64,000 nucleotides of DNA from Macrostomum lignano (GCA_002269645.1 NIVC01001381.1:85220-149219), one strand, 5' to 3'; shown: positions 16,581-39,462, counted from the stretch's first letter. The notes: generated from the sequence alone by a model not told the origin. Numbers and translations: made by a program.

Positions 16581-17011
16581 TCAGACAATGCACACCAGGC
16601 TGTCCATCCACCTGGCCCAGCCGGTGCCCAGCTCCAGGGTGCGGCACGCCCAGCTCAGCTGACTGCCAGTCTGGTTGGCGAACTTCAGCAGCTCGGACAC
16701 CCCAGCAGCTTTAGCTTCATCAAGCACGAACTTCAGCTGCGACTGTGAGCAGTCGATGAAATCAGCTGCCGGCCTGGCAAACAGCTTCATCAGCGTCAGG
16801 GAGGTGATGAGAAGACCCTGCACGTCTCTGGCCACGGATTCGCCAAGGGAGGTCAGGCCGGATGTGCGCAGCTGCCGCCCCCAGCAACTGGCGATGTAGC
16901 TGGGCACCGGGATGGCTGCCAGGTTGCTGGCTGACCATTCGATTCGGCCGGTGCTGGTGCTGGACAGCAGCGCTTTGAACTCCGGAGATTGCCGATGGTC
17001 CAGGGTCAGGG
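16581..17011 (-). CDS. PARP4: PARP4 terminal exon: MVP-interacting C-terminal domain
   Basis: GLTSLG...LLITSLTL and [20 protein letters not shown] resemble human GIQSLG...LIATMLVL and ICPRLELGNDWDSATKQLL. Confidence 0.82.
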
Positions 17012-38000: not shown

Positions 38001-39462
38001 CTGAGCCTTATCTAATCTCAGCCAGCCAATGAGTGCACTGCTTGGTGTACACTGGCTGAGCCTTATCTAATCTCAGCCAGCCAATCAGCGCACTGTCTTG
38101 TGTACACTGTTAGAGCCTTATCTAGTCTCAGCCAGCCAATCGGCGCCCTGTCTGGTACACTGGCTGAGCCAATTATCTAATCTCAGTTCTCAGCCAGCCA
38201 ATGAGTGCACTGCTCGGTGTACACTGGCTGAGCCTTATCTAATCTCAGCCAGCCAATGAGTGCACTGCTTGGTGTACATTGGCTGAGCCTTATCTAGTCT
38301 CAGCCAGCCAATCGGCGCCCTGTCTGGTACACTGGCTGAGGCTTATCTAATCTCAGCCAGCCAATGAGTGCACTGCTTGGTGTACACTGGCTGAGCCTTA
38401 TCTAATCTCAGCCAGCCAATGAGTGCACTGCTTGGTGTACACTGGCTGAGCCTTATCTAATCTCAGCCAGCCAATGAGTGCACTGCTTGGTGTACACTGG
38501 CTGAGCCTTATCTAATCTCAGCCAGCCAATGAGTGCACTGCCTGGTGTACACTGGCTGAGCCTTATCTAATCTCAGCCAGCCAATGAGTGCACTGCTTGG
38601 TGTACACTGGCTGAGCCTTATCTGATCTCAGCCAGCCAATCAGCGCACTGCCTAGTTTACACTGTCTGAAACATTCCATATTATAATACCACAGCGAATT
38701 ACCTTCCTAGTGACAATGCAGGACACAATGCCGCCATTGGTCATGATTAATCGTCGATAATTCTGCTTGTCTTTGGGCCGAACGCCGCTGTCCAACAATA
38801 GCGCGAATTGAAGGCTATTCAGTGGACCAGACGCTTGCAAAGGTGGAGCCTGAGCAGTTGAAGCAGTAGCCTCACCTGAGACTGAGCTGGGCACGCCAAT
38901 ATTCTTGAGTGTTGGGAACAAGATTAAGAGGCTAATAGTTAATTTGAGCATTCTCATTGGATAGATATCCAAATAAAGGTAACTGAAAATAATTCTCTCA
39001 CCAGCGATAGAGGAAGAGGCTTTGCAGCAGAACTAATGCTTGGCTTGGTCAGCGAGTGCAACTTTGCTGTTGATGGAAGCAGAGATGGCAATGCATATAT
39101 ACTAGGAAATTTTAAATTTCATAATAAACCAGACTATTCTAAAGAGAGATTTAGGGCCCAACAGTTTGGGATATTTTTAGCCAATCCTACAAAACAGCCA
39201 ATGCTTTAGTGTTGCGTGGTTGCAAAATTGTAAGTAATAATAATAATATCTTACTTGACTGCATTTGTGGCTGGCATTTTGACAAGGCAGACATAACTAG
39301 CTTTGTTGAGTTGTTGTCAGCGCCAATCACTGGCTTTGGTTTTGAAGCATCCTTTCTAATTGAAGACACCTGCAGCTCTGTGGCCTGATTAGACTTAAAA
39401 GTGTCATGGCTTTGGGTTGTTGTAGGAGCCAGAAATTGGAAAACTGGATGCAATTCAGGCAT
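16581..39462 (-). CDS. PARP4: PARP4 / vault PARP ortholog (~2,400 aa, ~30 exons) with inserted ubiquitin-like, actin-fragment and Hsp70-SBD modules
   Basis: Phase-consistent GT-AG exon chain (-): ~39462-39255, 39066-39002, 38903-38703, 37916-37721, 37315-37194, 36806-36603, 35872-35702, 35048-34875, 33654-33365, 32815-32218, 31730-31227, 29751-29357, 28618-27922, 27564-27463, 27343-27227, 27058-26857, 26766-26446, 26022-25762, 25104-24985, 24714-24625, 23624-23532, 23285-23187, 22503-22357, 21392-21291, 20551-20426, 20244-20092, 19366-19223, 19121-18367, 18222-18030, 17011-16581. Domain order and motifs follow human PARP4. The 5' end is uncertain. Confidence 0.9.
17045..18012. repeat. (GACA)n microsatellite with ACTAA variants
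   Basis: Direct; intron of PARP4. Confidence 0.97.
18472..18777 (-). other. Hsp70 substrate-binding beta-domain-like segment inside PARP4 exon 19121-18367
   Basis: [20 protein letters not shown]...RNQTIP...FYEGE...NNRRL...[10 protein letters not shown] aligns to Hsp70 [20 protein letters not shown]...RNTTIP...VYEGE...IDANGILNVS. Confidence 0.88.
19400..20015. repeat. Purine-rich GA/GGTAGA compound satellite
   Basis: Direct; intron. Confidence 0.93.
20698..21240. repeat. 14-bp minisatellite (TAGTGTCAGTCAAA); sister array at 22685-23165
   Basis: Direct. Both arrays sit in the equivalent intron of duplicated exon cassettes. Confidence 0.93.
21778..21960. repeat. 9-bp tandem array (AAACATCCT) flanked by 11-bp direct repeats CTGGCCTCGCC
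   Basis: Direct repeats at 21767-21777 and 21961-21971. Confidence 0.85.
23845..24510. repeat. 24-bp minisatellite (TGTCTGCTGTCTCCAATCCTGTTG); inverted sister array at 26085-26395
   Basis: Direct. The same ETADTTGL pseudo-peptide appears on opposite strands for the two arrays. Confidence 0.93.
25140..25560. repeat. 30-bp minisatellite (ATGACCAACCTAATGACCAGATAAGCGACA); related short array at 23695-23830
   Basis: Direct. Confidence 0.9.
25762..26022 (-). other. Actin N-terminal fragment (D-loop) as an in-frame PARP4 exon
   Basis: [11 protein letters not shown]...[28 protein letters not shown]; phase 1-1 exon with canonical AG/GT. Confidence 0.88.
26525..26752 (-). other. Ubiquitin-like domain (76 codons) inside a PARP4 exon
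   Basis: [17 protein letters not shown]...[13 protein letters not shown]...[11 protein letters not shown]; about 31/76 identical to ubiquitin by manual alignment. Confidence 0.92.
27678..27810 (+). mobile_element. Possible tRNA-derived SINE fragment
   Basis: CAGTGGTGAACGC (A-box-like) and GGTTCGATT (B-box-like) at tRNA-like spacing; no complete cloverleaf seen. Confidence 0.3.
27922..31730 (-). CDS. PARP4: PARP4 VIT and vWA domain exons
   Basis: [20 protein letters not shown]...[39 protein letters not shown] and [19 protein letters not shown]. Confidence 0.93.
29161..29230 (+). mobile_element. tRNA-like head (SINE or tRNA pseudogene)
   Basis: GGGGCGTAGCCCAGTGGTCTAACGC resembles a tRNA 5' end with A-box; GAGTTCAA is B-box-like; no matching 3' acceptor stem. 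Confidence 0.38.
29890..31060. repeat. Pyrimidine-rich ~22-23-bp minisatellite (CCCCACTCTCTCCCTATCCCTC)
   Basis: Direct; intron. Confidence 0.95.
32218..33654 (-). CDS. PARP4: PARP4 catalytic ADP-ribosyltransferase domain exons and start of VIT
   Basis: [11 protein letters not shown]...[22 protein letters not shown]...AAKYS, VALG and FSDREFAVF: H-Y-E triad retained. Confidence 0.93.
32898..33285. repeat. (GACA)n compound microsatellite inside the catalytic-domain intron
   Basis: Direct. Confidence 0.95.
33668..34697. repeat. ~40-bp minisatellite built on (GATT)n with ACATGGCT
   Basis: Direct. Confidence 0.95.
35122..35612. repeat. 31-32-bp minisatellite (CTAAAGCGTGCAACCCTCTCCAAGTATTTAA), ~15 copies
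   Basis: Direct. Confidence 0.95.
35980..36515. repeat. 21-bp minisatellite (approximately GCTGCAGTCTCCCCACAC core)
   Basis: Direct; 7-aa periodic pseudo-ORFs on both strands. Confidence 0.93.
37721..38903 (-). CDS. PARP4: PARP4 BRCT domain exons
   Basis: [33 protein letters not shown] | IDYLLVSD...[17 protein letters not shown], a typical BRCT pattern. Confidence 0.85.
37970..38652. repeat. 55-bp minisatellite with an internal 9-bp hairpin, ~12 copies
   Basis: Unit CTGGCTGAGCCTTATCTAATCTCAGCCAGCCAATGAGTGCACTGCTTGGTGTACA. Confidence 0.93.

Follow-up and report, generated by a model that had tools for sequence, protein, structure and literature searches.

The minus strand of a 64,000-nucleotide stretch of the Macrostomum lignano genome (GCA_002269645.1, NIVC01001381.1:85220-149219; the whole stretch is called the window below) carries a gene of 33 exons (39480..16581) which, judged by its domain order and closest relatives, is the M. 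lignano orthologue of the vault poly(ADP-ribose) polymerase PARP4, and whose long linker holds segments related to ubiquitin, actin and Hsp70. Vaults are, to our knowledge, the largest eukaryotic ribonucleoprotein particles, their function has been unknown since 1986, and PARP4 is their only enzyme. An initial annotation of the window had described about 30 exons chained in one frame, and mapping resolves 33 exons that form a single open reading frame (ORF), with GT-AG at 32 of 32 introns. The landmarks it named are found where it placed them (the VDILATQGW motif at 27257..27283, the end of exon 16 at 27227 and the start of exon 33 at 17011), and the position it gave as the end of the gene, 39462, is that of the first in-frame ATG (39462..39460); the gene model itself starts at 39480, with an in-frame stop just upstream. 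The spliced coding sequence of 7,524 nucleotides ends with a TGA at 16581, and its translation is exactly that of the GenBank entry 'hypothetical protein BOX15_Mlig032305g1, partial [Macrostomum lignano]' (P0001; 2,507 residues, 100% identity), which was found as the top match of roughly concatenated minus-strand ORF pieces between 39032 and 16584. The Mlig_3_7 GenBank annotation goes back to RNA-seq, by way of a genome-guided transcriptome that combined StringTie and TACO with a mapped de novo assembly and had its ORFs called by TransDecoder (PMC5730564). Because the locus-tag style of P0001 (BOX15_Mlig...) matches that annotation, its exon chain is taken to be derived from transcripts rather than predicted ab initio.

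Enzyme core and C-terminal domain

From N- to C-terminus the predicted protein comprises BRCT, PARP, VIT and vWA domains, the linker and a MINT-like C-terminus, all coordinates given from here on being on the minus strand unless marked otherwise. The BRCT domain (37806..38831; residues 122-201; Pfam E 4.6e-7) is encoded by exons 3-4 and the PARP catalytic domain (32440..33492; residues 537-704; Pfam E 1.9e-22) by exons 10-11. The catalytic histidine lies in LLFHGS (33397..33414), the tyrosine in GIYFAD (32725..32742) and the glutamate in DREFAVF (32479..32499), and these residues, H566, Y606 and E687, occupy columns that are invariant across six aligned PARP4 cores. A VIT domain follows (31440..32265; residues 763-875; Pfam E 2.7e-34), then a vWA domain matched by VWA_3 (exons 13-14, 28351..29526; residues 1022-1167; Pfam E 3.7e-11) and, in exons 15-16 (27227..27564), the last core motifs before the linker, FTSFVAVE (27475..27498) and VDILATQGW; the T/S-F-V-A-E columns of the FTSFVAVE region are likewise invariant in the six-protein alignment. 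After the M. lignano entries, the best matches are PARP4s of sponge, annelid, molluscs and vertebrates (E 1e-150 to 5e-183), with 33-36% identity to the best-matching annotated PARP4s over the core. The domain order, the intact H-Y-E residues and these closest relatives bear out the assignment to PARP4 made in the initial annotation.

A C-terminus of the type that binds MVP had been proposed as well. The last exon (exon 33, 16581..17011, including the stop) is predicted to carry a MINT-like domain at 16596..16871, since a profile of 12 other PARP4 C-termini, from which M. lignano was left out, matches residues 2412-2503 with a conditional E of 5.8e-10 (E 1.2e-7 in a 208-sequence set), and the SLG and LELG..W motifs are present. 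A sequence search of this exon against PDB chains, carried to E 10, returned no match. The MINT-type C-terminus of M. lignano PARP4 is accordingly proposed with weak to moderate confidence. In human PARP4 the MINT residues 1562-1724 dock the enzyme inside the vault, where it sits within the cage with its chain reaching into the lumen (PMC12280208).

Ubiquitin-, actin- and Hsp70-like exons of the linker

The linker spans ~1,050 residues and 17 exons, and exons 18-30 are all phase 1-1, so that each could be skipped or duplicated without a break in frame. The initial annotation had placed ubiquitin-like, actin and Hsp70 inserts between the vWA-adjacent motif and the C-terminus, and mapping, Pfam and phmmer confirm all three as in-frame exons. 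Behind the helical-looking exon 17 (AEILAQ...QADAK; 26857..27058), which has no Pfam match at E 10, the single phase 1-1 exon 18 (26446..26766) encodes a ubiquitin-like domain (26525..26746) and a basic tail. The domain is matched by Pfam ubiquitin (E 1e-16; residues 1458-1529, profile positions 1-72), is identical to ubiquitin at 31 of 76 positions and retains L8, R42, K48, H68, V70 and the LRLRGG tail (26525..26542), the GG being internal to the chain and followed by RGPSP. Domain and basic tail align together with residues 3-99 of Ub-eS31 (RPS27A) at E 8e-15, and this alignment, which runs into the eS31 N-terminal extension, hints at a ubiquitin-S27a fusion gene, rather than a polyubiquitin, as the source of the exon-18 module. 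Unlike such fusions, the M. lignano module is internal to a 2,507-residue protein and is followed by no eS31 zinc-finger part.

Exon 19 (25762..26022) combines an acidic run with actin residues ~4-60 (25775..25948), the core of the D-loop lying at 25781..25852. The stretch matches an actin reference at E 7e-15 by phmmer, and in a phmmer search of 5.8 billion proteins true actins were matched via this stretch alone at E 2e-10 to 5e-21; the full-length Pfam Actin model gives a sub-threshold E of 0.02. Identity to actin is concentrated in the D-loop core (22/24), against 9/29 in the N-terminal flank and 0/15 in the C-terminal flank. What the exon encodes is a fragment only, and not the complete actin/ASKHA ATPase fold of ~375 residues.

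Exons 20-30 (19223..25104) are eleven short phase 1-1 cassettes belonging to four duplicated families, and three acidic motifs at 24656..24706, 23230..23277 and 21334..21384 resemble the P-stalk tail. In the P1/P2 stalk proteins this C-terminal tail is an acidic run followed by MGFGLFD. The M. lignano likeness is at the level of the motif, the Ribosomal_60s (P1/P2) profile of Pfam finding no match in the linker; carried to E 10, Pfam finds no meaningful family in exon 17, in exons 20-30 or in the Q/P-rich part of exon 31. Exons 26, 28 and 29 (20092..22503) form a three-copy family with the core 'ER(N/D)IDAAI(S/A).(S/D)K(P/N)(K/P)' and no detectable relative. If the linker is a string of mimics, this family may imitate an unrecognised host motif.

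Exon 31 (19121..18367) opens with a low-complexity part rich in Q, P and A, read directly from the sequence (18787..19121), with three FG motifs (18976..18990, 18889..18903 and 18817..18831), for which the designation of FG-repeat region is a weak one. It then turns into an Hsp70 piece (18030..18786) made up of the hinge DLLLLDV (18754..18774), the beta part of the substrate-binding domain (SBD-beta, 18475..18786) and a lid-like helical part that runs on into exon 32 (18031..18474). Pfam HSP70 matches residues 2161-2264 (E 1.2e-12, profile positions 379-484), and the piece aligns with HSPA2 residues 392-495 (E 6e-15). It thus holds hinge, SBD-beta and a lid-like part only, and lacks the nucleotide-binding domain that completes an Hsp70. 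A single-sequence AlphaFold2 model of the piece was uninformative (pLDDT 41).

Modules in the linkers of other PARP4 proteins

A profile built from the cores of six invertebrate PARP4s was used to gather relatives from 1.84 billion representative proteins, and 52 non-vertebrate PARP4-like representatives were scanned with Pfam, the full family list being available for a 26-protein subset. Among the 52, Pfam finds 14-3-3 in nine, ubiquitin in eight, synaptobrevin in five, HSP70 in four, actin, Ribosomal_60s and Nucleoporin_FG in three each, Ras-family domains in two (best E 5e-44) and EF-hand in one, in addition to a few singletons; no tubulin, EF-Tu, GAPDH, histone or other ribosomal-protein family occurs in the complete list of the 26. 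Modules were placed by local phmmer with hub reference sequences entered by hand, and the resulting classes agree with the Pfam counts. At least a dozen module types are present in PARP4 linkers from Amoebozoa to lungfish. The examination of other invertebrate PARP4s that the initial annotation had called for therefore finds inserts of the same kind recurring in many phyla, with sets that differ between lineages.

In the dictyostelids Heterostelium, Cavenderia, Dictyostelium purpureum and Synstelium the linkers carry 14-3-3 modules and P-stalk tails, with heptad runs of the Pol II CTD type in the first three of these and WH2-like motifs in Heterostelium and Cavenderia. One PARP4 of Pelomyxa has a Ran-like module followed by FG repeats and another a Rab-like module; actin is found in Nematostella, Hydra, Ephydatia, Mytilus, Pinctada and Magallana, the Hsp70 SBD in Magallana and Saccostrea, ubiquitin-like domains in Biomphalaria, Elysia and Sinanodonta, CTD heptads in Sycon, the C-terminal helices of 14-3-3 in Branchiostoma and a VAMP SNARE motif in the lungfish Protopterus. 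Several linkers combine modules: that of the sponge Ephydatia joins actin to two Ribosomal_60s tails, that of the sea slug Elysia holds ubiquitin, a 'EEDEDFGYGLFD' tail, FG repeats and YSPTSPS heptads, that of Mactra reads 'EESEDEEEMGFGLFDD' and then directly YSPTSPTYSPVSPTY, and that of Pinctada continues from actin into an almost complete calmodulin. A SNAP-25-like resemblance in the Mactra linker, noticed by eye and by regular expression, was dropped for want of phmmer or Pfam support. In Pelomyxa schiedti P0141 the Ran-like module (~1250-1455) keeps the acidic DEDDDF tail, its P-loop and DTAGQ motifs are degenerate (GDPQTGKT and DMPGV), and several hundred residues of FG-type repeats follow; by these features the module looks like a pseudo-GTPase. 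A PARP4 fragment from ENA contigs (P0162 / P0195) shows the same module order as M. lignano, namely a ubiquitin-like domain (57/76 identical to ubiquitin, with GG and then Pro), an acidic 'MEYGCALFDD' and an Hsp70 hinge with SBD. Where the models of animal proteins are complete, the vWA domain precedes the modules and a recognisable MINT-like C-terminus follows them, as is the case in Macrostomum, Ephydatia, Mactra, Elysia, Mytilus, Hydra, Sinanodonta, Nematostella (isoform X1) and Protopterus.

The short motifs are specific to the linker. A P-stalk-like motif occurs in 11 of 116 PARP4 linkers, in 0 cores and in 0 of 200 linker shuffles, and YSPTSPS heptad runs occur in seven linkers and 0 cores. 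Canonical P-stalk tails with Pfam support and FG-repeat regions are both present in PARP4 linkers other than that of M. lignano.

The larger modules are conserved selectively. The actin module spans residues ~2-65 in each of nine PARP4s drawn from five phyla, and its 24-residue D-loop core is identical to actin at 21-23 positions, whereas the N-terminal flank retains 8-17 of 29 and the C-terminal flank 0-9 of 15. Because the core is kept at 21-23/24 while the flanks have diverged to 0-60% identity, the pattern would require long-term purifying selection on the D-loop segment. The boundaries of the module are the same in sponge, cnidarians, molluscs and flatworm, and derived flank states are shared, GSL (GSG in actin) being common to flatworm and molluscs and TGMA to sponge and Hydra; these shared states suggest that the actin module was passed down vertically within PARP4 rather than captured afresh repeatedly. 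Of ten PARP4 ubiquitin-like domains compared, nine keep the RGG end, with Pro as the next residue in four. The search with the actin fragment also brought up P0042 (a EukProt TRINITY transcript), P0041, P0023 and P0044, which may represent additional integrated actins or may be chimeras of assembly. One of the four has BRCT, NACHT and TPR domains (NLR-like) and a complete actin fused at its C-terminus, and the remainder are protist proteins with actin and vWA, in one of which the vWA splits the actin.

Many modules are fragmentary or disabled, as in the case of actin 2-~65, the C-terminal helices of 14-3-3 (fragments covering only residues ~142-237 or 185-230), the SNARE motifs and the degenerate Ran-like domain, and modules in this state cannot do the job of the parent protein. 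Lineages differ in their module sets, and most vertebrates have none. A lungfish isoform, X5, lacks exactly the 112-residue VAMP cassette, and between the M. lignano paralogues 8 of 181 residues and one indel differ in linker exons 20-25, compared with 5 of 862 residues in the core. The recurrence of the modules and the selective conservation of the mimicked segments argue against purely neutral capture of the main modules, and the comparison is taken to show a tether on which copies of central cell proteins have long been displayed, with selection apparently focused on the mimicked epitopes.

How much of this had been described before? The initial annotation knew of no such architecture, and here it has to be corrected, since the class of architecture has been partly known since Perina et al. 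2014, who, in a few sentences, report PARP4-like (Clade 5) proteins with an appended 14-3-3 in four amoebae, lancelet, sea urchin and Capsaspora, actin or actin-binding domains as well, and ubiquitin-related ones in Acanthamoeba, with Salpingoeca among the carriers (PMC4245714). The phenomenon is the same at the level of Pfam/SMART, and the dictyostelid and lancelet cases are recovered here. By contrast, flatworms, Hsp70, synaptobrevin, calmodulin and Ran/Rab are not covered in those passages, nor are the short motifs (P-stalk, CTD heptads, FG), the fragmentation, the epitope conservation, the cassettes or the idea of a bait or decoy. A full-text literature search on PARP4 or vault together with decoy, tripwire or mimicry, with most subscription journals outside its coverage, found neither a bait or decoy proposal nor a description of the wider module set. 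What appears to be new is the combination of ubiquitin-like, actin and Hsp70 modules in a flatworm, a breadth that takes in twelve or more kinds of module in PARP4s as far apart as those of Amoebozoa and lungfish, and the epitope-selective conservation together with the cassette structure.

Vertebrate PARP4 shares the domain order of the M. lignano protein, and its linker is fast-evolving too. Daugherty 2014 found recurrent positive selection in primate and bat PARP4 confined to a disordered region of >300 residues (exon 30), as the initial annotation had correctly stated for primates, and proposed contact with pathogen factors (PMC4038475). That human region has no detectable domain homology (PMC4038475), whereas the M. 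lignano linker carries modules. MVP is interferon-induced, as cited in the same paper (PMC4038475), an indirect hint, like the positive selection in mammals, that PARP4 may act in immunity.

The introns of the PARP4 gene (within 16000..40000) are packed with micro- and minisatellites that give rise to long spurious ORFs on both strands. They include (AGAC)n satellites at 17046..18021 and 32897..33285, a 22-bp unit repeated 45 times (29895..30869), a 37-bp unit repeated 28 times (33668..34697), a 31-bp unit (35124..35612), a 55-bp unit (37992..38669) and, between linker exons, units of 14, 24 and 30 bp. In the UniProt model P0002 (A0A1I8HZR9), which is truncated after the VIT domain, antisense ORFs from genes nearby are built into the first ~1,000 residues, so that the model is a chimeric over-extension; the ORF opposite the potassium-channel exon (60729..61097, minus) is contained in it nearly verbatim.

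Downstream of PARP4 on the same strand lie two adjacent NWD1-like STAND NTPase ORFs (1353..3075, minus), one with a P-loop (nSTAND1/NACHT-type, E 5e-6 to 2e-3) and the other matched by HTH_NWD1 (E 1.3e-11), of a family often tied to innate immunity. A major-facilitator transporter gene (10961..15586, minus; MFS_1 E 4.6e-11) has its first coding block twice, almost identical (12681..13466 and 14531..15586), each copy continuing in frame into a 'YLTEDTP / YQTEDTP' minisatellite. On the strand opposite to PARP4, and upstream of it, an exon of uracil/thymine-DNA-glycosylase type (48585..49100, plus; UDG superfamily E 2.8e-13) is followed by a long A/Q-rich ORF (50027..51085, plus), and 48585..51085 looks like a thymine-DNA-glycosylase-like gene. 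The exon with a potassium-channel tetramerisation domain (BTB_2/T1, E 6e-31) lies at 60778..61440 (plus).

Readings of the tether

What purpose would a tether of this kind serve? In the mechanism proposed here, the enzyme part would be joined to a C-terminus of vault-docking type by ~1,050 residues of symmetric cassette exons, and this tether would be a string of molecular mimics of hub proteins lying in the vault lumen, a position taken from human vaults. Whatever binds, cleaves or modifies the real hubs could then be drawn to a mimic beside an ADP-ribosyltransferase of active type, and the most likely clients would be pathogen effectors and toxins, with the tether acting as bait or trap. Alternatively, the tether could be a tripwire, such that cleavage anywhere along it would free the enzyme from its anchor. 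A function as bait, trap or tripwire is a tentative reading that may well be wrong, and we prefer it because the modules read like a list of targets and cofactors of bacterial, plant and viral toxins and proteases, because they are fragmentary, because their set turns over among lineages and because the mammalian linker is positively selected. Ubiquitin is a target of bacterial and viral deubiquitinases and of ubiquitin-modifying effectors, the actin D-loop is attacked by bacterial actin proteases and, at K50, by the ACD cross-linking toxin, and the di-leucine in the hinge of Hsp70/BiP is cut by subtilase cytotoxin. Moreover, 14-3-3 and calmodulin are activators of ExoS/ExoT and of adenylate-cyclase toxins, respectively, small GTPases are toxin targets, VAMP is the target of clostridial neurotoxins, and the P-stalk tail is the docking site of ribosome-inactivating proteins.

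Two known systems offer a comparison. The integrated decoys of plant NLRs (RRS1-WRKY, RGA5/Pik-1 HMA) are copies of pathogen-targeted host proteins that vary between lineages and are often truncated or disabled. The PARP4 modules are similarly homologous to host proteins (ubiquitin, actin, Hsp70), their repertoire varies among orthologues, and the copies are truncated or disabled; however, the carrier is a cage-tethered ADP-ribosyltransferase rather than an NLR/STAND ATPase, it bears several modules in series, and an effector, a mode of activation and an immune phenotype would be conjectural for it. NLRP1 and CARD8 are tripwires whose fast-evolving disordered linkers mimic viral protease sites, and cutting separates halves with different fates. 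The PARP4 tether likewise separates enzyme from anchor and carries mimics of host sequences, but its cleavage is conjectural, and it contains whole folded domains and not only short motifs.

Several observations weigh against a bait, trap or tripwire. That reading is an inference from primary structure, and endogenous docking fits the same data about equally well, since the same hubs have many host ligands. It is unclear how large toxins would gain access to a tether enclosed in the lumen. The geometry of enzyme, tether and anchor is an uncertain assumption for Amoebozoa, because the animal MINT profile detects no C-terminal domain in amoebozoan PARP4 homologues. The M. lignano FG and P-stalk-like motifs are degenerate and lack Pfam support, inclusion of exon 18 is supported by one transcript-derived model and skipped in two older ones, and actin, ubiquitin, Hsp70, 14-3-3 and calmodulin all come from abundant mRNAs, which also fits capture of retrocopies. 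Finally, conservation of the duplicated acidic linker exons does not exceed that of the introns beside them (in family B the exons are identical at 33/64 positions and the upstream intron at 89/118), and only the pair 25 and 27 is clearly more conserved than its introns, for which reason part of the tether may be drifting neutrally.

The strongest competitor is an endogenous adaptor, in which copies of hub proteins would recruit host ligands as vault cargo, as PARP4 substrates or for placement of the vault, with no pathogen involved. The ligands would be those of ubiquitin and actin, clients and co-chaperones of Hsp70, translation GTPases, 14-3-3 partners, karyopherins or SNAREs, and the vault could come to lie at the cytoskeleton, at membranes, at ribosomes or at nuclear pores. 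All modules are either hubs of protein interaction or short linear motifs for binding; some linkers combine the actin fragment with polyproline runs and WH2-like motifs in the manner of an actin regulator, and the Ran-like module and FG repeats paired in Pelomyxa recall a nuclear-transport theme. In agreement with docking, depletion of PARP4 alters the human vault interactome, from which its authors propose that PARP4 controls the choice and localisation of cargo (PMC12280208), and Perina et al. 2014 took the appended domains as links to signalling (14-3-3), the cytoskeleton (actin) and ubiquitination (PMC4245714). An adaptor would be expected to keep one stable module set, yet the sets differ between neighbouring lineages and are absent in most vertebrates, and many modules are truncated such that the parent's own ligand sites are missing, as in the 14-3-3 fragments. 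A linker that changes rapidly between paralogues and is positively selected in mammals is moreover more typical of conflict than of housekeeping. For these reasons the adaptor is regarded as a serious but doubtful possibility.

Neutral exon capture, which the initial annotation had offered as its alternative, would have a disordered tether passively gather decaying fragments, whether retrocopies or shuffled exons, of highly expressed genes. The abundance of the parent mRNAs agrees with this, as does the fact that one exon apiece encodes the ubiquitin-like domain, the actin fragment and the bulk of the Hsp70 piece; phase 1-1 linker exons have been tandemly duplicated together with their introns, several pairs being no more alike than those introns, and the satellite-filled introns mark a very dynamic locus. 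Passive gathering does not account for the constant boundaries of the actin module and a D-loop core kept while its flanks diverged, for the RGG retained in nine of ten ubiquitin-like domains, or for module exons that are all open and in frame, and the equally abundant tubulin, EF-1A, GAPDH, histones and other ribosomal proteins are missing from the Pfam list of 26 proteins. As a general account it is improbable: neutral capture fits poorly with the ubiquitin-like module, the actin fragment and the Hsp70 piece, where recurrence and conserved epitopes speak against it, and it may apply to the repetitive acidic exons that are no better conserved than introns. More improbable still is an artefact of annotation or assembly, in which the insert exons would be nested genes or would not be spliced into PARP4 mRNA. 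Such an error might be suspected from two older M. lignano models (P0015 and P0016 in UniProt, for the gene and its paralogue), in which exon 17 is joined to exon 19 in frame, the ubiquitin-like exon is omitted and the model ends by intron read-through past exon 25, from the visibly chimeric P0002, and from a search for spliced RNA-derived (Logan) contigs of M. lignano with a linker query, which recovered none. Against it, a C-terminus of PARP4 type follows the last of the inserts, is read from the same strand and stays in frame across the 32 canonical introns, the modules have no start or stop codons of their own and are fragments rather than genes, the GenBank model is transcript-derived, and the modules occupy the same internal position in independent annotations, including RefSeq entries of Hydra, Nematostella, Mytilus and Protopterus. 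A gene-fusion artefact, nested genes and a recent retrocopy are all unlikely.

Outside most vertebrates, the PARP4 linker would thus be a conserved place at which copies of hub proteins are displayed, and the set displayed reads like a catalogue of classical toxin and effector targets and cofactors. A vague idea of vaults in immunity thereby becomes concretely testable in Macrostomum, Nematostella, Hydra, oysters and dictyostelids. In its widest form, which we consider unlikely though far from negligible, the vault would be an ancient caged decoy array of Amoebozoa and animals, its PARP4 tether offering copies of the most heavily targeted hubs in the lumen, where toxins, proteases and effectors of pathogens would be captured, ADP-ribosylated or sensed. 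If this is true, the vault particle would have a role in innate immunity, and the principle of the integrated decoy would reach beyond plant NLRs to an enzyme of animals and amoebae. If host partners are what the modules recruit, they would show by what logic vaults naturally take up cargo, which would be relevant to engineered vault nanocapsules.

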